64,000 nucleotides of DNA from Oikopleura dioica (GCA_907165135.1 OU015567.1:6138001-6202000), one strand, 5' to 3'; positions 10,190 through 53,312 are shown, counted from the first letter of the stretch. Notes: generated by a model from the sequence alone, not told the origin. Numbers and translations are program-made.

Positions 10190-13100
10190 ATGCCTCCCAA
10201 AGCTGTGCAAAAGAAGGAGTCTGGCACCATTGAATGCTCAACGTAAGTACTCTTCCTTGATTTCTTTAATTTTTCATTTTTTTCTCTGCTACCGAAAGCG
10301 ATACAAATGGTAACATTTGCTTTTTCGCTGCGGAACGGGGCACTTCCTCTTTGTCACATTTTGGGTTATAGTTTAACAATCTGGATAAAGTAGTATTTGA
10401 GTAGTTGTATAGAAGGTAAACATTCCGTTATCCGCTTCCTCCCGCACTACAATGAAATCGTCTTTTCAAAGCTTATCGCCTTGAAAAAGCTTAACTTCAA
10501 TTTTTTGTTTCCACTTCGTCAACTAAAAAAGAGAAGATGCACCGTCGTAAAACTGTTGCAGTGCCAAAGACAGTTCCCGAAAATGTCGGATTTTCGAGAC
10601 GCATGACCACGATGCAATCGAAGGAGAATAAGCCCAGAACGGAATGTTTTCGAATACCTTAAAAACAAAGCATCTTTGAAAATTATAATTGTTATTCTAA
10701 TTATAAGTCTTACATAAAAAAAATTATATAACCAGTTATATAAAAGTTGCGGATCTTATTTCTCTATAGTTTCATGTTAATGACGCTTATTACGTCCGAA
10801 TAAAGAATATTATTTGAATTGAAAAAATAATTGGAAATATAATTGAAAAATTATATTACCAATTATATAACAATTAGGGCGGTCCTTCTTCAAAATAAAA
10901 ATAAAGAATTTAATTTGATAATAACAGTATGTCCTCATTTGAGAGTTTAACTCTAATAGAGTGTGCTAAAAACTTCCTCAAGCCCAGTAATCGTCGCAAG
11001 ACCGAATATTTTGGCAAAACGCGCCCTTTCAAAAGTACTTCAGCTCGGTTGCAATTCTCTCTCGTTTGATGCTTCATATTGCAGCTTTGTTTGACTTTTG
11101 AGATTTCACCGCTACAATAAGACACATTTTCCAACTGGAGCCAATTTACAGTCTTGACCTCATAATTCTTTTGAACTAGAACATGGTCGTTTTTGCGATT
11201 TCGCGAATTGTAACCGCATAAAAAGAAATTAGCAAACGAGGTGGCTCCTTCATCTCAGGCCTTGGAAAGAAAAAGAAGCCCAAGTATGTTCTTTTTCATC
11301 TTTTTTGATGGATTTATCTTTTTTGTTTTGAAAGTATCAACAGTCTATTTTTGACAAGTGTTCTATTTGTTCACAATTCTTACGGGAATTTACTGATATT
11401 CAGGCCGGTCGAACAAAGAAACATTTTCACCTGGCCGGAATGGTGCGATTCATCAATCAACAACGAAAAATGGGACGGCGGATCATCATCGCCGAGCAAA
11501 AAGCCTGAAAAGGGTAAATCCCCCTCTCCCGCGCTCTTTGACGATCCAGAAGGGCAACCTGCCCTGCCCGAGTCATTGGCCGCCAAATGTAAGAGCTGGA
11601 AGAGGATTCCAGAGCTCTTTGCCAACGGTGGGGAACCTGCGTTTTTGAGGAGTCGCCTGGGCATGGCTACAAATCTCAGAGTCATTACAGTCAGTATCTT
11701 TCAGAGACAATCTTGTAAACATCAATTTCGACAATTTTGACAACTTAGATAAATTTACTCAGGATTAGGCTTGATCCGTAAAGAGTACTAGAAATAGACA
11801 GGAGCCAGATTTCAATTTGTAGCCAGCTGAGATTGCCCCCATCGATTGTCCAAACAAATGCCAACTTGACGTTCTCGCCCTTCATTCGACATTTATTGAG
11901 CGCTATCAGGACGGTGCAAGAATTCACGCATGAAAGCGAGGGCTTGGAGGAATTTCGCCCTGGTTATCTCATTTATTCGCTGAATAAAACTGGTGGAAAG
12001 GAGCACAAACCGCTTGTCAATAATAATGGAAAATATGCCGTCAAGGTAAGATTTAAATTTCAACTCTGAAAACATCTCCATTTTTAGTTGTATTTTATGG
12101 GCAAGTTCCGTAAAATCATCATCGACGACAATATTCCCTGCGACGAGCATGGTATTCCGCTCTTGCCAGTTTCGCAAAATATCGCAGAAATCTGGCCCTT
12201 GGTTCTGTCAAAAGCACTTCTGAAAGTTTGCTCATTTGGACTGTCGCCGCGAAGTTCTGAAATTCCCGAATTTCATCTCGTGACGGCGTTGACGGGCTGG
12301 CTGCCAGAGGTGCTGAACGGCTCCTGTGTTAAAACATGGGAGCTATTGCAGGAGTATCTGAACGAAGAACTCCTTGAGCAGGCTGCCCCAGTCGAGGAGG
12401 CGAAACCCGCGGCGAAGGAAAAAGAAGGAAAGGGTGACAAAAAAGACAAGAAGAAAAAAGACGAGGGCCCCGCTTTGCCACCAGCAAAAGTCGGTACATT
12501 CTGTCTTGCAGAGATCGAATCCCCCGATGCGCCCATCCACCCTTGTCAAATTGTCAAAGTTCGCGATCGACCGCTTCGGCCGCCATCGCCGGATCCAGAA
12601 ATCCCCGCCTGGAAACTTATCAGGCCGAAACAAGACGTCCTTGAAATGCTCGCCGAAATCGAAAAGAAACAAATTCCAAATCGCTGGTGCATGATCCGTT
12701 CTCCCTTCAAAACGGAACGCGATGAAGCGGAGGAATCAGAAGTTCCCCCGAGCGAGACCCCATCAATGCAGAGCGTGGCGAACCACACTGTCGCGAATCC
12801 AAATGACTGGATGCGAATCGAAGACATCACAAACGACGAAAACTCGCGAATCTATCTCTTCCACATTCCAAAAAGCAACGAGCTCAAAGTCACGGCGCAC
12901 GAGAAAGTGACCAATTTTGACGAGTTCTTCGTTGACGATCATCACGAGAGCTTCTTCTACGCAGACATGCCAGAGGAAAACCAGGACATTATCGTCTCCT
13001 TTCAAGTGTTGAACTCGAAGCTTCCACCAAAACCATCTTCCGCTTCCGAAATCAAGGAAGAGGAAAACCAAGGATCTGATAACGCCGTGTTTATTCCAGA

Positions 13101-23024: not shown

Positions 23025-24528
23025 ATGGGCAAGTTATACACCTACCCCGATAACTTCCGTGCCGATAAGATCAAGGCCGTCGCCGCTATCTCCGGATACA
23101 AGCTCGAGGTACAACTTGTAGTAGCATTTGTATAGTCACAAGCCTATCATTACGCTGGGTAAACTTTATATGTTATCTTTCGGGTTAGTTGGAGCGTAAT
23201 TCCGATAGCTTCGCCAGACCCTCTACGTAGTGGCTTATCTTATTAATATTAATAATTATGATCGTGTAGTATTTCTTCTATCGCACTATCTCATCTTTAT
23301 CTTTCAGGTCGCCTCTGACTACGTCCACGGCGTCACCAACAAGACACCCGAGTTCGAGTCAAAATTCTTCGGAAAAGTTCCCGCCTTCGAGGATGGCTCC
23401 ACCGCCCTCTGCAACGACACCGCCATCGCCCACTTCGTCGGCAACGATCAAACACGAGGTGGTGCCAAGGCCCACGACGTTCTCTGCTGGTCTGGCTTTG
23501 CCGACAGCACCCTTCTCCCCGCCATCGCCCAGTGGGTTTGGCCTACTTTGGGTGTCATCGCTCCCAACAAGCAGCACGTCTCCGAGGCCAAGGAGAGCCT
23601 TAAGAAGGCCTTCACCTTCATGAACGGCTACCTTGCCACCTGCACTTTCCTCGTTGGTGAGCGAATCACTTACGCTGACATCGCCGTCGCCTTGACCCTC
23701 AAGTCCGGCTACGAACAGGTCTTCACCCCAGAGTGGCGAAAGGCCTACCCCCATGTTAACCGATGGTTCTTGACCACTGTCAACCAGCCAGCTGTCGCCG
23801 GCGTCATCGGTGAAGTCAAACTCGCAGTCAAGGAGGCCCAGTTCGACGCCAAGAAATTCGCCGAAGTCTCTGGCAAGGCCAACAAGAACGCTGCCAAGAA
23901 AGAAGCCAAGAAAGAAGCGAAGAAGGAGGCAAAGAAGGCCGAGCCCAAGGCCGCCGCTGCCCCCGCTCCCGCCAAGGAGGACAAGCCCGCCGACCCATGG
24001 GAGGGCCTTGCCAAGCCATGTGTCGACATGGACTCCTGGAAGCGATTCTACTCCAACAACGATGAAGACAAATCCGTCGAGCACTTCTGGAACAACGTCA
24101 TCACCGACGAAGTCAAGAAGGAGTACTCCCTCTGGGTTGGAACTTACAAATACGCCGACGAGCTCACCCAGCCCTTCATGGCCTCCAACCTCATCGGTGG
24201 CATGTTCCAGCGAATTGAGAAGCTCCGAAAGCACGTAAGTAGATTCAAAATGATGCTTTTGCTGATTACTCTTTATTAGGCTTTTGCTTCCTGCGTTGTC
24301 GGTGGCGTGCCCAACGACCTCAACATCACCGGTCTCTGGTTCTGGCGAGGACAGACCCTTGCCTTCCCCCGATCTCCTGACTGGCAGATCGACTACGAGG
24401 TCTACGACTGGCAGAAGCTCGAATGGGACGCCCCCGAAGTCAAGGATATGGTCGCCAAGTACTGGATGTGGGACGAGAAGGCCCAGTTCGCCGGCAAGCC
24501 CTTCAACCAGGCCAAGATCTACAAGTAA
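23025..24528 (+). CDS. EEF1G: Elongation factor 1-gamma
   Basis: GST-like N terminus (KLYTYPDNFRA, GKVPAFE), KKEA linker, WKRFYSN, FMASNLIGGMFQR, WQIDYEVYDW; strong C-ending codon bias. Confidence 0.97.
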
Positions 24529-24810
24529 ATCCCTCTTTCTTTCCCCAAGTTCAGGGAGTTCTGCTTCCTCTTATTACTTAGGCGCAATTTCCAATTCATC
24601 CCTCCTTTCTGTCGTAACAAGAACTGCTTCATTTTTCCGATAATATAAGTTAAATGAATTATTGAAAGAAAGTGATAAAAAAAATTTGTTTATTTTTGTA
24701 TTATTTTTATTTTTTATCGATTGGGCAGATTTACAGAGGACTTGAATGTAAATTTCCAATTGGAAATGCAGTCGCAGGGAAAGTTAAAATTAAAGCAGAT
24801 AAAAAGAAAC

Positions 24811-25083
24811 TTAATACATTCGGTTTCGGTAGTGAGACTTCATTCGATTTCGGAGGGAGGATCGGGCAGCTCCGAAGCGGCTTCTCGGATTCGGTTGGGT
24901 GTAGACAAGTCGTGCTTGGTCGTTGCCGAAGTAACCCATGTTAGGGTTCGTTCGTCTTCCCATCTGATAGTCAATGCCGGTCTGGATATGATTGTTAGCA
25001 TTGTTCATGTAGCGCTGGTGGCTGATTCCATCGCAAGCGACGAAAGAAACGGAAACAGCGAGAAAGAGAGTGTTGAAGAGCAT
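24811..25083 (-). CDS. Small secreted basic peptide, copy P1 (90 aa, intronless)
   Basis: Signal-like MLFNTLFLAVSVSFVAC, Arg-rich tail; 81/90 identical to 27543-27815; TATA box upstream. Confidence 0.85.
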   Translation of the reverse strand: MLFNTLFLAVSVSFVACDGISHQRYMNNANNHIQTGIDYQMGRRTNPNMGYFGNDQARLVYTQPNPRSRFGAARSSLRNRMKSHYRNRMY

Positions 25084-25152
25084 GTTTAGGTTTTATTTGT
25101 TTGTTTGATCGGTGTAGATGATTTGATGATTGTTGCAGGTCTCTCGTCTTCC

Positions 25153-25215
25153 TTATATATTCTCAAAATCGGGAACGGTGGCGTCCGAGCTTGTCAAAAA
25201 TACGAAGAGCGCCGC
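25153..25215 (-). promoter_or_regulatory. TATA promoter of P1 with upstream motifs shared with P2
   Basis: Minus strand reads GCGGCGCTCTTC ... CTCGGACGCCACCGT ... GAGAATATATAA; same blocks at 27411-27468. Confidence 0.75.
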
Positions 25216-25532
25216 GTAGCTCACGTCTGCTAGTGTCGCTATTATCATAATTAATGTAAACTTTTTTTACATGTCGTAGCTCTTACTAAACACTGGGCAA
25301 AGCATCACTTATCAAATATAAAACGACATGCAGGCAACTTGATAGGGAGCCCCATATACGGGTACCATACGAAAGCATGTAAAAAGCTGTAGTACATCGG
25401 CTATCCAAAATGTGCCTGGATTTTCATCTTATGAACCTAACTATAGTCGATCAAACGTCTTCCTTTTAGAATGCTTTGATGAGATCCTCAAGTTGAAATA
25501 TCACACTCCTAAATTTCGATTGGAAAGTAATA

Positions 25533-26299
25533 ATGAATGGATTATCCAAGGACATCGACAATCGCTATCGGTCCGGTCCAGCACCGCCCAAGCTGCTTTC
25601 AATGGACTGTCACACATGCAGAAAATACCAAGAAATCGAGCTCTTTCTTTGCTGCTGGCTCGACGGGACGCAGCCGACGGCATACTGCTCGCTAGAATGC
25701 CAGCAGACGGACTGGAATCGGCACAGGGCGCTGTGCTCGCGAAATACGCGTCCTCTCGATCGACTGAGAAGAGAATGCGACAAAAAAGTAGAAGAAAATC
25801 AGCACACACTGCAGTTGCTAGAAACGGCGAATAAAGACCTAAATCGGAAGCAAATGGACATTTTAAAGCTAAATGACTGTAAATACAAATTTCTCGATAC
25901 ACGACGTTAATTTCTCTTTCTTTCTAGGTATATATAGAAAAGACGAGAGAATAAAAGATCTCGAACGAATAAACGAAAAAACAAACGCTGACAAAACCAC
26001 CGCGCTAGAATTTGCAAAAGAGCAGGAAATCAAAAAAGATGCCTGGATAAAATTAGTCAATAGACATGAAAAAACGTAACTTATTTTTCTACAAAAACAT
26101 GTCTGAGAATCATCTTCCTTTTAGCATTTCCGAGAACACCAAACTTGAAACAAAAATCGCTGAAGATTCCAAAAAAATTAACGACATGCGAAGTGGTGTA
26201 AAGAATCTTATGGACAGGTTCATGGAGGAGAAATCAAAGCACAAGAAAGAGATAGAAGAGTTACAGTCTCGGCTCGATCTTCTAACTTCTGACAGCTGA
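25533..26299 (+). CDS. MYND zinc-finger plus coiled-coil protein (3 exons; start uncertain)
   Basis: CHTC...CC...YCSLECQQTDWNRHRALC matches zf-MYND; followed by K/E-rich heptads across two short GT-AG introns. Confidence 0.75.
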
Positions 26300-26577
26300 T
26301 CTCTACTAAGTCAATCTTCACCGATTTAACTGTACTGTACAGACACTCAGTAACTATCTATTCACTGCGAGAAACACGCCTTCTTCAGGCTCGAATATCG
26401 GAGATACAGTTCATAAGCGAACTTTACTACACATATTTTGATTATTTGACTTCTTTCTTTTTGCAATTTCAAAGAACCTATTTTAACAGGACTCCAACTT
26501 TCTTTCCACCTCAAGGCTCCAAAAACATTAACAGCAATAATCACTAGAGCGCTCTTTCTTGTAAATGATCATTTTAG

Positions 26578-28474
26578 ATGATAAAAAGTATCCGAGTAGT
26601 TAGACCTTCCATCAGAAATCGGACAGATAAACGTTCGCCCTTCAGTCCTCGTCAGAACTGGTTCAGGTGACGATTATTCAAAATTTACTGACGTGACAAA
26701 AAATTTTAGTTCTCCGAAATTAGCGAATTCTCGAAAGGGTTATCTTTCCTCAATTTACAAGAAATCGGAGCAATCCAGTCAGAATAAAGTGATCTTTGAA
26801 ACCGAAAGAGCGCCAGTAGAATCTACAGTCACCGTGAGACGCAACCATGTCGATCAGTTTACCGACCGAAATTTCATACTAATCGATTTCGAAGCCATCA
26901 ACAGCGAAATCTGCGAATTCCCGGCAATTTGGGCACGCAACGGCGAAATCAAAGCCGTCTTCCACGCATACTGCCGGCCAACAAAGGCGATCCGACCAGA
27001 TCGATACAATGGCTTTTACAAAGACTTTCTTGGACACAACTTGAAGTTTTATCTGAAACAGAACTCGTTTAAAAACGTCGAGTGGCAGTTTTGCAAGTGG
27101 TGCAAGCATCACAAACTTATGGTGGAGACGCAGAAGGGGATTTTTAATATTGCTAGTGATACTGCCATTGTGACCCAAGGAACTGAAGATTTCAACTTCC
27201 TCAATACTTCACTTCTCAATAATAAAGGTTAGAGTTATGAGACTTATGTTGTTACAGTTGGTCACCTTTTATACAACAGGCTGTCGAAAACTTTTTTTTG
27301 TTTCATTATTAGAGAACACAGAAATGCATCTTTTTTCTATGAGAAAAAATAAGTACTGATGATTACGTTTAAAATTGCATACAACGACATGAATGGCAGG
27401 CATGAGTTCGGCGGCGCTCTTCAGTTTTCCACTCGGACGCCACCGTCCACAAAATCGAGAATATATAAACGAAAAGATCGCCACGAAAGAATCATCTACT
27501 CATCTTCAACAGCCAACCAACCAAGCAATAAAAAATCAAAACATGCTCTTCAACACTCTCATTCTCGCTTTTTCTGTTTCCTTCGTCGCCTGCGATGGAA
27601 TCAGCCACCAGCGCTACATCAACAATGCTAACAATCATATCCAGACAAGCATTGACTATCAGATGGGAAGACGAACGAACCCGGACATGGGTTACTTCGG
27701 CTACGACCAAGCCCGACTTGTCTACACCCGACCCAACCCAAGAAACCGCTTCGGAGCTGCCCGATCCTCCCTCCGAAATCGAATGAAGTCTCACTACCGA
27801 AACCGAATGATCTAAGAGTTTTTCCAACACTTTCAAAGTCCTTTTTACCAATTCATTACAATGAAAGTCTCTTCTGTATAACCTTCCTCTCTGTATATCT
27901 GCCAATTCTTAATAAAAAATTCAAAAATTGAAACAAATAAGATATACAATCTTACAATTTTCGTCGGTTGACTTCGTAAGCTCACCCCTAATCATCAATA
28001 GTCAAAATGATCTCATCCTCTTAGGACTCTTAAACTATACTCTCTGACAGTCTGTTCAAACTAGAATTTAAGCAGTTTATCCTGTTTTGAGTAGTGATTT
28101 TATCAAGCGCCAAGCTGCCTAAAATCTAAAACAATGATTTTTTGTTTGCAAATTCTTATAATATATGACAAATATTATCACTATCATTTCACTATCACTT
28201 TCAAACAACGACCATTCTAAGTAATCATTTAGTTTCAGCGAAGGAACGCCCTTGCTACAAATATTTCTACGACCTTGACGCTTTATGGATTCACGCAATC
28301 GGCAGCGATCCTCCTCGCTCACCACGAATGCACAACATGGCCAAGGATCAAAACTGGCCCGATGTTCCCAACGCCCATTCTGGCATTCATGACACACTTC
28401 AGGTCTTGGTTCAGACTTTTATTCATTTTTTATTGTTATGCAAACTTTCTCAGACAAAATTGACAATTCTGTGA
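26578..28474 (+). CDS. ERI1-family DEDDh 3'-5' exonuclease (exons 26578-~26666, ~26709-27227, 28239-28474)
   Basis: ExoI ILIDFEA..EICEFP, FHAYCRP, ExoII VTQGTEDF; a phase-1 intron 27228-28238 joins to RPCYKYFYDL and ExoIII AHSGIHD. Confidence 0.8.
27411..27468 (+). promoter_or_regulatory. TATA promoter of P2, inside the exonuclease intron
   Basis: GCGGCGCTCTTC (27411), CTCGGACGCCACCGT (27432), GAGAATATATAA (27457), matching the P1 promoter. Confidence 0.75.
27543..27815 (+). CDS. Small secreted basic peptide, copy P2 (90 aa), nested in exonuclease intron
   Basis: ATG 27543 after an A/C-rich leader; 90% identical to P1; AATAAA near 27911. Confidence 0.85.
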   Translation: MLFNTLILAFSVSFVACDGISHQRYINNANNHIQTSIDYQMGRRTNPDMGYFGYDQARLVYTRPNPRNRFGAARSSLRNRMKSHYRNRMI

Positions 28475-28482
28475 CAGAGTTT

Positions 28483-28710
28483 CTAGTTTTGTTGATGATG
28501 TTTGATGAAGAGCATTTTTGAGTATCGTCGTCGGTCACGTCTTTCGTTTGGGTAGCTGACGATACGGGCCATTCCGAGATAGTTGTTCTTGATTCCCGAA
28601 TCGGGGTAGCTGCCCATTTGCTTCATTAGATGAGTGTAGGCACTATTGCGACCCCGGTTGAAGTTGATGGAGTCAGCTGAGACAAGAGCGAGAAATGGAA
28701 AGAGATTCAT
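28483..28710 (-). CDS. Small secreted basic peptide P3 (75 aa), diverged paralog of P1/P2
   Basis: Signal-like MNLFPFLALVSA; shares D.I...R, QMG, Y.G, AR(I/L)V..PN.R; TATATAAA at 28782-28792 and A/C-rich leader. Confidence 0.7.
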   Translation of the reverse strand: MNLFPFLALVSADSINFNRGRNSAYTHLMKQMGSYPDSGIKNNYLGMARIVSYPNERRDRRRYSKMLFIKHHQQN

Positions 28711-29122
28711 GTTTTTGATGTTTTTTTGAGTGGTTGTTTTTTGTTGTAATTGTTGATGTCCCGAAGGTTTAACCGCTGTGCTTTTATATAAAATTTTTGA
28801 GGCGCTCTTTTGGGAATAAGGGGGGTAGAGGGTCGTTTCTCCAGGCACCAGAGATCGACGATCAGAATCTAGTACTGCTCACTAATAATACTGGATCGGA
28901 TTTAGAAAGATGATTATATCATAAATATCATTTATAAATCTCATAAATAAACCGAACCATCATAGCTATATTACGTTTTCGACGGATTAAGAAGGAAGCT
29001 AACAAGCGACTCGACGGAAAATGTTTTACGGAGAGCGCTGAGAAAAAATCAAAATCATCAATCAGCGCCAACGAAAAAATGAATTGATCCTTATCCAAAA
29101 AATAACGTTTTGTTTTGCTAGA

Positions 29123-31329
29123 ATGAGCGGGGGAATGTACTGCAATGATGATATGGGTGCGCTGGTGATGGATATTGGCTCGCATTCGGTCAAAGCTGGT
29201 TTTGCTGGTGAAGAGCATCCGAAAATTTATTTCAATAATGTTAACGGAAGACACGTGGACAAGGAGACAGGACAAGTTACGAGGATCTTCAGAGATGAGT
29301 TTCTCAACATCCCCAAGTCTAATGTCGAGGTGCGCGACCCCCCTATCTTCCTCTTTCATCCCATTTTAAGATAGAAACATGCATGAACAAAGGATACATC
29401 GAAAACTGGAATCTATTCGAAGAACTGATGGACCACATCCTCACAAAACGGCTCGACGTCGAGCCTGAATTCCACCCCATTCTTTTCACAGAACAGGTAA
29501 AGTGCCTCTTCTCTCATTCCCTCATTATTTGAAAAAGGCACGTGCGCCGCCTGCAATTCGCGAAAAACTGTTAGAAATAATGATGGAGAAGTTCAAAATT
29601 CCCGCTTTTTTACACTGCCAAGAATCCAGTACTGGCTTGCTACGCAAATGGCCGAGCAAGTGGAATCGTTCTTGATGCTGGTGCAACTCATACAACCGCT
29701 TCAGCAGGTATTAGCTTTGATGTCAAATAAAAGCCTTGTATAAGTTAGTATAACCTTAAATTTAAGCTGATGTAGCTTGTTCGATGATTTACTTGAGTGC
29801 GTTAATCACACTCCAGCTTCTCTTCTTTAGAAGGAAATAGAAAGGAATAGAGCGTTCAAATTCGAAGTTGCTTCCCTGATGAATCACTTGATTGATGTTA
29901 TTTTTTTTAAAGTTATGGAAGGATACGTTATCAAAAACGCGATCATCCAAAGTCCCATCGGAGGTGACTACATCACTCGCAATGCTCTTCAACTCCTGAA
30001 AGCGTCTGACGAGAAACTTCATCTTCCCTACGAAATATCGCATAAAGAAGAGCTCAAACCTGGTCAGACAGGTGAGCCTTTCTCTTTCATCAACAATGGG
30101 CAAAGTTCGCTTTCTAGCGCCGGTTTTTCACCTGAAGAAAAATTTGCCAGAAGTGACGAACTCGTGGCGCGCGTATCAGGAAACAAGATTGGCGCAAGAC
30201 TGGGTTCATCAGATTATTCAAGTCTCTGAAAACGAGTAAGAGGGTCCCTATTGAAGCTTTGACTCTACCTTTTTTCAAGCTACCGGCCAGAAGAAGCCGC
30301 GATGCGTCCTTCCATAGAATACGAGTTTCCAAATGGCGCGAGTGTTGGCTACGGAGTAGATCGCTTTCGACTGGCTGAACCGCTCTTCAACACGAGAATG
30401 GTTGATAACAAGAACTCCCTCCTTGGCGTCGGGCATTTGATAACGTAAGAATAAGACTTTTTTCGATGAATTTTAAAGAACCATAAAAAGCAGAAAAGTT
30501 AGATCATATGGTATTTCAAAATTGACGCTAGAGTAAGGCTCAGGAAGACCAACCGTGCACCACTCCATGAACTTAAAATGTGGACAACCCTAACCATCCA
30601 CAGATTCTGAAGCCACGCCTCTATTTTTACCACTAAAATGGGTACCGTTATTACGGCACAGAAACGTGTGGTGCGCCTCACGAATTTACTCTATGAAGAC
30701 CACCTGACGCAAGTTTCGTGTGTGACCCACTGAACGGATTTTCAATGACGAGCTCAACTTTCTTCGATAATTTTAAAGTGCGATATGACTGATTGTAATC
30801 TCCGTATGATTTATGGTTCAAATTTTGACCTTCAAAGTATCGGTATCATCTTGGCACTATCATATGATTTACAAATTATCATATAAATTGTCGCCCTTCG
30901 GACTGAATACGTATTCATAGAACGTCACTTCACTACTGCGAAAACGAAATACGCCCGCAACTCGTCTCCAGCGTCATTCTTACTGGAGGAAATTGCAATC
31001 TTGCAGGGTATGATTTTTGATTTTCTTCTTCGATTCTTTTCAAACTGAAATTGGTAGTTTTGTTGATCGAATCAACATGGAGCTGCAGAAAACGCCGCCG
31101 CACATGAAATTCAAAATCGCAAACGGACAGCCAGGTGCCGTACATCAAACCGATCGTCGATTTGGGTAAAAAACGCGTCCCTCGGGCAGCTTTATGTTTT
31201 CGTTTTCTGTTTAGTAACTGGATCGGCGGCTCGATCATTGCCTCACTGCCATCATTTGCGCCCATGTGGGTTTCGGCGAAAGATTACGCTGAAAGTGGCG
31301 TCAAAATCTTTGAGAGAAAGTGCATCTAA
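29123..31329 (+). CDS. ACTL6A: Actin-related protein BAF53/Arp4
   Basis: [52 protein letters not shown]; one apparent +1 T frameshift at 29606-29611. Confidence 0.9.
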
Positions 31330-51743: not shown

Positions 51744-53312
51744 ATGCCATCGTTGAAATCGAAGGGCAGCGACACGAGAGAGATTCTATTTGGCCTTGAC
51801 GCGAAGAATAATTCAAAGTCTGTCAAATGCCCGATTTGCAGCGAACGGATCAGGTGAGGCCCGATTAGATTTATTAATGAATTCGGATCAGTGTGGACTT
51901 GACGACCTTTACGGCTCATATCATTTCTCATATGAAAACAGGCATTGTTAAAATGAACTCGATTTAACCCTCTATCACCCTATACAAATCTAATATATAA
52001 CTTATATATAATATAAGTCAAATATAATAACAAAAAAACAGGAGATTCACATGAATGCCCAATCTGTATCGAGATGAGATCAAGGAACTTATCATTCTAC
52101 AGAACCTCTGGAGTGACAATGTTTGACACAACAAAACCGTTCAAGAAATCGCTAGAAAGACACATTTCGAGCAGACATCAGTTTTCTTGCGCAATGTGCT
52201 CTGAAACGTTGCCAACAAAGATGATAGATTCGGTCGTCTTCGGTTTAATACTGTTTATTTCGAACCCCTATTCGACCCTCTGAAAGACAGTCATTTGAAC
52301 AAAACGCGGCACACATTCACCGACGTAGATTTAAACAGCAGCCAAGCAGCACTATCAAAATCATTAGACCTCAGTTCTACCAGAAGTAGCACCAATCAAG
52401 TCGTCTTGAACCAAAGAAAATCCGTCGATCTTCCAAAGAAACCGCACAAGCCGCCCTCACTGCCGAAAAGTCTGCGGAAATCAACGAAGAGAACCGCTCT
52501 CAAAGTCCCAAAACTACCAACACCCGCAACGCCAAAAATAGAACCGGAAGAGATACCGTACTTGTTCGACAGAAGCGAGAAGCGAAAAGGAACGTCTAAC
52601 TGGCCATATTTGTACAGCATCGTGAAGACGAAAAGCTCACCAGGAAGATGGTTCACTGCGGTTACGTTTATAATGGAAATGGACGGGAAATTCTATCACG
52701 TGCGCAAAGACGGTATTGGAAACGATATCAATCAGATTCACATGAAATGTAACAACGGTGTGCGCCAGTGTAAATGGAAAGGACTTCTCCACAGGTAAGG
52801 GTAAATTAAATTCATTTATTCAGCTATTAGCCACCTGAAATTATGAGATTTTTACCCAAGAAAATAAACTAATTATATCCAATTAAATCGTCTAGGCTCC
52901 TAACCAACCTGCATACTAATAATCATCTGAAATTTTCAGAAAGGATCGCCAGCTGACAGCGAATGATGTTCAGTTCTATAATCCTGAGAGCTACACGGTT
53001 CTGGAACACTCTACCGAAGAGCACTTAGGAAAGGATCCAAAATACAGTTTCGTCTCAAAAATAGCTTTCAAATAGCATCCATTTTTAGCGCAGTGCATTG
53101 AAAACGCTCATGAAAATGAACCAACCGCTGAAGAAGCCTCTTCCCTGCCTCAAAATATCGAAGTAGACATCCTTAAGGTAATTAATCAATAAACCTACAC
53201 AAGTGCATATATTTTAACCGCAAAGGTTTTGAATGAATCCATTCGCCGCAGAAGCAGCTGGGTAAAAAAAAAAGCAAATGGAAAATGCATCCTCGGAGCA
53301 TTTTCAACTTAG
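51744..53312 (+). CDS. Multi-C2H2 zinc-finger protein with FLYWCH-like module (3' end uncertain)
   Basis: CPIC..HIISH, CPIC..HISSRH, CAMC..HLNKTRH, then FYHVRK..HMKC..QCKWKG..EH; includes a GC-AG intron. Confidence 0.65.

Follow-up and report, generated by a model that had tools for sequence, protein, structure and literature searches.

Does a group of three short open reading frames (ORFs) in the genome of Oikopleura dioica consist of genes and, if so, what might their products do? The ORFs, here called P1, P2 and P3, lie in a 64,000-nucleotide stretch (the window) of chromosome 2 of O. dioica Okinawa (OKI2018_I69; OU015567.1, assembly GCA_907165135.1). Comparison with wild alleles shows that they are real genes under purifying selection and not chance ORFs. 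They belong to a family with at least five genes in this genome, only one of which (P1) is annotated, and the family is, on present evidence, restricted to the O. dioica lineage of Okinawa type. The family was previously unrecognised; its general kind, the orphan small secreted proteins, is familiar. An original prediction, made from the sequence of the window, had placed three secreted-peptide genes here, and its coordinates and strands hold, with P1 (24811-25083, minus strand, stop codon included), P2 (27543-27815, plus strand) and P3 (28483-28710, minus strand) being intact ORFs of 90, 90 and 75 amino acids (aa), respectively.

Purifying selection on P1, P2 and P3

The comparison set consists of marine-metagenome contigs in ENA (L003/L005, L004 and L006-L010), which come from Tara Oceans and other collections (Tara Oceans PRJEB4352, ERZ17293588, ERZ27290310, ERZ27290470 and ERZ28655000) and were recovered by searching with the family as well as with antisense ORFs picked by prokaryotic gene callers. 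Contig L003 aligns to window positions 24430-29844 at 92.4% identity. The marine contigs derive from an O. dioica of the Okinawa type that differs from the reference by about 8% across 5.4 kb. Three contigs from one sample (L002, L004 and L007) show equal coverage of 6-7x, consistent with their origin in the genome of one animal.

We observe that the ORFs of P1, P2 and P3 are intact in every one of these wild contigs, with P1 intact in L003 and L006-L009, P2 in L003, L004 and L010, and the wild allele of P3, P0002, in L003/L004. The ratios of nonsynonymous to synonymous divergence (dN/dS, or omega; Nei-Gojobori) against orthologues are 0.07-0.23 for P1 and 0.20-0.36 for P2, both ranges being taken from the pairs that differ, and 0.10 for P3, whose wild allele carries two nonsynonymous and five synonymous differences. 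Nonsynonymous differences fall below the neutral expectation in four comparisons (binomial P = 0.006 to 0.009 each). Furthermore, the 31 variable sites found among seven distinct P1/P2 sequences are distributed over sense codon positions 1, 2 and 3 as 7/5/19 (P = 0.004), so that the earlier suggestion of selection on the peptide is supported.

P1 and P2 are each overlapped by a long ORF on the opposite strand, of 122 aa over P1 (24721-25089, plus strand) and of 137 aa over P2 (27492-27905, minus strand). Because third codon positions of the sense reading coincide with first positions in both antisense ORFs, the third-position excess rejects the antisense frames as coding; as real genes they are ruled out by the codon-position pattern.

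Conservation between the window and L003 is concentrated in and around the three genes. The coding sequences (CDS) are 94.5-96.9% identical and their flanks of approximately 110-150 bp are 90.7-98.0% identical, versus just 79-80%, with many indels, in the intergenic stretches 25234-25532 and 27926-28372. Upstream regions reach 92.7% for P1 (versus 79.9% for the adjoining intergenic DNA), 98.0% for P2 and 90.7% for P3, while the 3' stretch of P1 (24700-24810) is 92.8% identical and the putative 3' untranslated regions (UTRs) of P2 and P3 are each 95.5% identical. In size, these conservation islands match the predicted transcription units.

These results bear on a reading in which P1, P2 and P3 are not genes at all, being chance ORFs, pseudogenes, or exons or UTR of the gene model for a MYND-finger protein that spans P2 and P3. 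P2 and P3 are indeed absent from the protein collection and lie unannotated inside the range of this 470-aa model (25533-29082), and the long opposite-strand ORFs over P1 and P2 could be taken the same way. We nevertheless consider this reading extremely improbable, since the third-position excess and dN/dS values well under 1 are found in the proposed frame only, the ORFs are intact in all wild contigs, and P1/P2 similarity falls sharply at the ATG and at the stop. P1, which has the same promoter block as P2, lies on the other strand and upstream of the MYND gene, and so cannot be a MYND exon. In addition, an AATAAA at 27221-27226, just ahead of the stop codon (27230-27232) of the ORF at 26693-27232, could end the upstream gene, that is, the real MYND gene. 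The exact P1 protein is present in NCBI/UniRef, where it derives from GCA_907165135.1 and is the sole annotated family member, and it is predicted in the published AUGUSTUS annotation, which used RNA-seq hints. We infer that P1, P2 and P3 are expressed.

Anatomy and duplication of the genes

By their layout, P1, P2 and P3 are three independent intronless genes with TATA promoters, and their mRNAs are predicted to be about 0.4-0.5 kb long. All features given here lie on the strand of their gene. Within the promoter and 5' leader regions (25084-25233 for P1, 27393-27542 for P2 and 28711-28860 for P3), a TATATAA is found 76, 81 and 80 nucleotides (nt) upstream of the respective ATG (25153-25159, 27462-27468 and 28784-28790), and all three leaders are A/C-rich, in line with what had been predicted. 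The putative 3'UTRs (24690-24810, 27816-27925 and 28373-28482) are accompanied by AATAAA signals 100, 96 and 49 nt downstream of the stop, at 24706-24711 (with another at 24689-24694) for P1, at 27911-27916 for P2 and at 28429-28434 (with another at 28418-28423) for P3. Over the whole window, TATATAA is counted 26 times versus 4.5 expected from shuffles, and part of these 26 are palindromic double counts and small clusters (e.g., 10724-10870 and 51994-52011).

P1 and P2 are head-to-head inverted duplicates on either side of the unrelated MYND-finger gene, and P3 lies tail-to-tail with P2, 668 bp beyond it. The two duplicates are 90% identical as proteins and 92.7% identical, without an indel, as CDS nucleotides. 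Aligning their upstream regions reveals a common promoter block (GGCGGCGCTCTTC, CTCGGACGCCACCGT and GAGAATATATAA) with 66% identity, followed by 62% identity in the 5' leader, 41% in the first 60 nt past the stop and 67% in an island around the poly(A) signal, which agrees with the claim that the UTRs have drifted around a conserved peptide. An in-frame upstream ATG in P2 would extend its ORF to 140 aa. Because a stop codon lies 12 nt ahead of the P1 ATG, and P1/P2 similarity drops and gains indels upstream of the common ATG, the 90-aa reading is right for both genes.

The synonymous divergence of P1 and P2 (0.19) is far under their UTR divergence, which fits either codon constraint or ancient gene conversion. 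Recent gene conversion was considered and rejected: paralogues do not cluster within genomes (dS of 0.13-0.25 between paralogues and 0.07-0.17 between orthologues), so that nothing points to conversion after the sampled lineages separated. With respect to codon usage, the NNC share of Y-ending codon pairs is 0.71-0.76 in P1/P2, with values of 0.87 in EF1G and 0.46-0.62 in eight ordinary neighbouring ORFs, and Arg in P1/P2 is mostly encoded by CGA. This shift of P1/P2 toward EF1G is a weak hint of fairly high expression.

Family members and database searches

A profile search of 1.84 billion representative proteins recovered only P1/P2, the P3 allele and a new 79-aa protein, P0003 (E = 6.5e-15). 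When P1 and the family alignment were used to query 5.8 billion proteins through a word index, these three clusters came up again and nothing else did. P0003 is encoded on contig L002 (2369-2608, plus strand), where a neighbouring ORF shares a 90%-identity cluster with an OKI2018_I69 protein from the pseudoautosomal region (PAR) chromosome, OU015568.1. On that chromosome, at approximately 3.32-3.33 Mb, we find two identical and unannotated copies of an 89-aa gene, P4 (L013:2811-3080 and L013:12005-12274, plus strand; also present at L012:12054-12323). Both copies are inside a tandem duplication of approximately 9.2 kb that also repeats annotated genes of 252, 109 and 412 aa and a VWA/EGF gene; the tandem array may run past the fetched DNA. 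The three-gene cluster described by the original prediction is thus present but makes up only part of the family, of which another chromosome carries two or more further copies.

P4 shares 52% identity with P1 and 76% with P0003, which is its wild metagenome allele. In P0003, a CGA-to-TGA change removes the last 10 residues, and the DNA past this stop remains recognisable, in the same frame, as the sequence of the P4 tail. The P0003 gene region is 83% identical to the reference, versus 89-93% in its flanks. Between P4 and P1/P2, dS is ~1.4, dN ~0.30 and omega 0.22; between P1/P2 and P0003, dS is 1.1-1.7, dN ~0.3 and omega 0.19-0.30; and omega is 0.32 for P4 versus P0003.

P3 is a probable distant paralogue. 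It matches P1/P2 with BLASTP E values of 0.002-0.003 and, against a profile from which it was left out, reaches 9.7 bits, ranking third among 244 window ORFs after P1 and P2, while only 5 of 2,000 composition-matched shuffles score as high. It also shares the gene architecture of P1 and P2 and adjoins P2. The kinship that had been proposed is therefore suggestive and not proven, and of the motifs cited for it, AR.V..PN.R fits P3, whereas P1/P2 need one extra residue (AR.V...PN.R).

Outside the family itself, searches of described families were negative. No family member gave a match above the cut-offs in Pfam (best E value, 0.02), and none matched in a profile search of PDB (best E value, 0.18), which, together with the two protein searches above, agrees with the claim that no described family is involved. 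A scan of JGI metagenomes with back-translated patterns yielded 107 pattern matches, 0 of which were confirmed; the sole exact 20-mer match there (L011) lies in a contig with 58% GC and no family ORF and is a chance match. Used as a query, the antisense 137-aa ORF found close wild alleles only. A tblastn search of the whole window with the family revealed no additional member, and a weak match at 52045-52167 (minus strand; E = 0.05 to 0.2) was dismissed because it has no ATG-initiated ORF of at least 40 aa; an Rfam scan of the window found no RNA family. Literature searches on Oikopleura neuropeptides, antimicrobial peptides and amidation returned nothing on the P1-P4 genes. No relatives in other organisms were found in the protein sets searched, in which small ORFs often go uncalled, whole genomes of other tunicates being outside the scope of the search.

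At the nucleotide level, the 20-mer TCCTCCCTCCGAAATCGAAT, which codes for SSLRNR, is identical in P1/P2 (24842-24861, minus strand; 27765-27784, plus strand) and P0003 (L002:2584-2603), and it differs at one base in P4, despite dS > 1 between the paralogues. Further exact runs between paralogues are TACTTCGGCAACGA and TCTTTCGTCGCTT. Such runs could reflect codon bias, nucleotide-level constraint or chance.

Properties of the predicted proteins

The proteins begin with putative signal peptides (MLFNTLFLAVSVSFVAC before DG, MNLFPFLALVSA before DS and MQLRSFFHALVVSFVAS before DG; 17 aa in P1), with a hydrophobic core of 12-14 residues and small residues at positions -3 and -1 (V-A-C, V-S-A and V-A-S, each followed by D), and the family products are presumably secreted. 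The only Cys is residue 17, within the signal peptide, and the mature chains are Cys-free; in this, as in being intronless and Arg-rich, the genes are as had been described. Mature chains have 62-73 residues, an isoelectric point (pI) of 10.5-11.2, a net charge of +8/+9 and a grand average of hydropathy (GRAVY) of -1.2 to -1.4, with Tyr making up ~8% of the composition. No member contains an N-glycosylation sequon (N-X-S/T). The helical hydrophobic moment reaches at most 0.39-0.49, and the mean hydrophobicity is negative. An AlphaFold2 model from an eight-row alignment shows tentative helices only (mean predicted local distance difference test [pLDDT] score, 56; predicted template modelling [pTM] score, 0.25). 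The mature proteins are predicted to be intrinsically disordered.

Across paralogues, the best-kept block comprises the first ~12 mature residues, D-G/S-I-S/N-x-Q/N-R-x-x-N-N/S-A. Other blocks kept across paralogues are Q/K-M, G-Y-F/L-G, A-R and a basic tail with R-x-R, and S-S-L-R-N-R is found in the tails of P1, P2 and P4.

A candidate processing site in P1 and P2

P1 and P2 each have a single dibasic site, which follows a Gly residue (GRR, residues 42-44, within QMGRR). This GRR is invariant in seven of seven distinct P1/P2 sequences, one of which has a synonymous change in an Arg codon. A cut at this position is predicted to produce a 24-mer with a net charge of -1 and a 46-residue tail with a net charge of +8. 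The original prediction had read the site as a signal for amidation and dibasic cleavage that is lacking in P3, and both the distribution of QMGRR and the count of 24 residues are right. It holds for P1/P2 and not for the family, however, as the corresponding residues are QMGSYP in P3 (Gly, no basic pair), QMRKWR in P4 (dibasic RK, no Gly) and KMEKWR in P0003 (neither). Since P4 and P0003 lack the Gly, and P3 and P0003 lack the dibasic pair, amidation is not a family property, and the amidation site would be at most an innovation of P1/P2.

If P1 and P2 were prohormones or neuropeptide precursors, a convertase would cut after R-R, a carboxypeptidase would trim the basic residues and the Gly would be used for amidation, giving DGISHQRY(M/I)NNANNHIQT(G/S)IDYQM-amide, a signalling peptide made in a few neurons or endocrine cells. 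The single canonical and invariant G-R-R speaks for this, as does the position of the putative peptide, which begins right after the signal peptide and whose first 12 residues are the best-kept block at a paralogue dS of >1. The RK of P4, at the same position, would likewise yield a 24-residue N-terminal fragment. Lineage-specific neuropeptides are known in tunicates, and P1/P2 resemble the Gly-dibasic precursors of Ciona-specific peptides in having a signal peptide followed by a 24-residue segment ending in G-R-R (PMC6475428). They differ from such precursors in that their single site is unconserved in P3, P4 and P0003, in that the downstream segment is equally constrained, and in that no sequence similarity of P1-P4 to known peptide families was found.

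The last points weigh against the prohormone. Within P1/P2, 2 of 24 positions vary in the 24-mer and 6 of 46 in the remainder, and GYFGN, AR and SSLRNR persist between paralogues whose dS exceeds 1; by these measures, constraint on the tail is roughly equal to that on the N-terminal 24-mer. Constraint on the tail and the survival of motifs at saturated synonymous divergence are unlike the pattern of a precursor with a dispensable remainder, and fit a protein used whole or as two functional halves better than a prohormone with a spacer. Furthermore, the family duplicates readily, with identical copies in the 9.2-kb tandem repeat, the codons used tend toward those of genes with high expression, and a literature search pairing "Oikopleura" with "amidating" gave no paper in the collection searched. 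An amidated neuropeptide is thus possible and not favoured, and we regard a prohormone function as unlikely. A narrower version, in which P1/P2 have become a larvacean-lineage-specific peptide signal within a young orphan family, with the amidated 24-mer and possibly a second cationic ligand released from the tail, seems to us quite unlikely. An RFamide reading of RSRFGAAR was rejected, because no basic residue comes after the Gly and because P3, P4 and P0003 lack the motif.

Candidate functions of the family

The explanation that we tentatively favour, while holding it short of probable, is that the genes form a family, restricted to one lineage, whose secreted, disordered and polycationic products work outside the cell and largely as whole chains, with optional cleavage at GRR in P1/P2. 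Each product would be exported through a cleavable N-terminal signal peptide as a Cys-free, unglycosylated and hydrophilic polycation of 62-73 residues, and the whole polycation would bind an extracellular polyanionic partner, candidates for which are microbial surfaces, the acidic glycoprotein/cellulose matrix of the house, or a receptor. A convertase would probably cut P1/P2 at their single GRR, giving the near-neutral 24-mer and the 46-residue +8 tail, and this cleavage would be a clade-specific addition in P1/P2 and not the ancestral mechanism of the family. Conservation of the N-terminal 12 residues, of the central G-Y-F/L-G...A-R block and of the basic tail suggests that the secreted polycation functions chiefly as an intact chain.

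Several points weigh against this explanation. The case for expression draws on conservation and one gene prediction, the signal peptides were judged by eye (hydrophobic core and -3/-1 rule), and that of P3 is short, at 12 residues. Low AlphaFold confidence from an eight-row alignment is weak evidence for disorder. The step to a whole polycation is drawn from conservation in a handful of sequences, with at most 10% divergence in the P1/P2 set, and the invariant GRR, together with the P4 dibasic pair at the same position, means that processing could be more central than we assume here.

The same features can be read as host defence, with the whole protein, or the +8 tail freed at GRR, inhibiting microbes on the body surface, in the gut or in the house. 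The genes are small, of secreted type, strongly cationic, lineage-restricted, multi-copy, intronless and TATA-driven. Many antimicrobial peptide precursors have a layout of signal peptide, near-neutral piece, dibasic site and cationic piece, as in P1/P2, and Ci-MAM-A and Ci-PAP-A of Ciona are linear cationic antimicrobial peptides with precursors. The family resembles the Ci-MAM-A/Ci-PAP-A type in being small, secreted, Cys-free, strongly cationic, lineage-specific and multi-copy; it differs in that P1-P4 are very hydrophilic, have no amphipathic face, are under purifying selection and show no sequence similarity to these peptides. The original prediction had listed antimicrobial peptides as candidates, and while the tail is indeed strongly cationic, it is hydrophilic, with a GRAVY of -1.25 to -1.35, and not amphipathic, its helical hydrophobic moment being 0.48 at most with mean hydrophobicity negative, unlike membrane-active peptides. 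In addition, dN/dS values of 0.1-0.3 give no sign of diversifying selection, and no similarity to known antimicrobial peptide families was found in Pfam, the protein sets or PDB. We look on host defence, like the prohormone, as unlikely.

A third candidate is a small structural or assembly component of the house: the oikoplastic epithelium would release an Arg-, Asn-, Tyr- and Gly-rich polycation, which would attach to acidic glycoproteins or cellulose. Its composition and the codon-usage hint of high expression are compatible with such a role. Mussel foot protein-3 is likewise a small (5-8 kDa), Cys-free protein with a pI of >10, rich in Arg, Asn, Gly and Tyr, and occurs in many variants; we take the likeness in size, pI, lack of Cys and composition as a lead only, and the Oikopleura family differs in its Tyr content of ~8%. 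Among secretory tissues the oikoplastic epithelium predominates, homologues are lacking for 44% of the 80 oikosins described (PMC3390340), and orphan genes mark oikoplastic territories (10.64898/2026.03.31.715263). Like P1-P4, oikosins are secreted proteins from this group of organisms, many without homologues (PMC3390340); they differ in that many carry extracellular domains and that they are described as highly glycosylated, whereas P1-P4 contain no sequon. No oikosin homology to the family appeared in the searches of 1.84 billion and 5.8 billion proteins, NCBI entries included. The family proteins start with MLF, MNL, MQL or MLL and not with M(K/R)(I/L/F), a start that is typical of oikosins (59 of 80) and not strictly defining (PMC3390340). 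For a core part of the house, it would also be odd that no relative was found outside the Okinawa-type lineage. The proposal that the products are oikosin-like thus finds no support in homology, sequons or start, and we consider a house component very improbable.

As a category, orphan small secreted protein genes describe the family well: they share the short intronless ORF, the signal peptide, the lack of homologues beyond a narrow lineage, duplication both nearby and at distant sites, and poor annotation (one of at least five copies). This is a category and not a family, and it says nothing on mechanism. We regard the result as a solid but ordinary orphan-gene finding, with defence, house matrix and hormone as inferred candidates for the role.

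The MYND gene and annotation of the locus

The window belongs to a compact metazoan genome and carries Nup98-96, androglobin, ALIX and EF-1-gamma; the genes called near P1 include SKIP/SNW and an actin-like gene. The MYND gene between P1 and P2 (25533-27232, plus strand) encodes a MYND zinc finger, a coiled coil and, by Pfam, a weak exonuclease-like region. Its last large exon (26600-27232, plus strand) gives a sub-threshold RNase_T/DEDD match (E = 0.0012; 19.9 bits versus a cut-off of 24), and MYND, coiled coil and exonuclease-like domain make an unusual combination. The annotated 470-aa model (plus strand) extends from the MYND-finger ATG to a stop at 29080-29082, close to the actin-like gene at 29123, running over P2 on the same strand and P3 on the opposite strand, and is probably chimeric. 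On the metagenome contigs, the ENA gene caller mostly picked the antisense ORFs over the true P1/P2, and such antisense calls hide small eukaryotic genes from protein-database searches.

Significance

The family adds an unrecognised and constrained set of secreted proteins to the very compact genome of O. dioica. It is also a concrete case of how small secreted genes are missed, with P2 and P3 swallowed by a probably chimeric model and one of at least five copies annotated. If the products are hormones, defence peptides or house-assembly factors, they would provide a handle on the lineage-specific physiology of an ecologically dominant zooplankter and would be relevant to how rapidly the cryptic species within O. 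dioica have diverged. Should P1/P2 prove to be a peptide signal, the birth of a hormone from a generic secreted polycation could be traced stepwise among the paralogues of one species complex.

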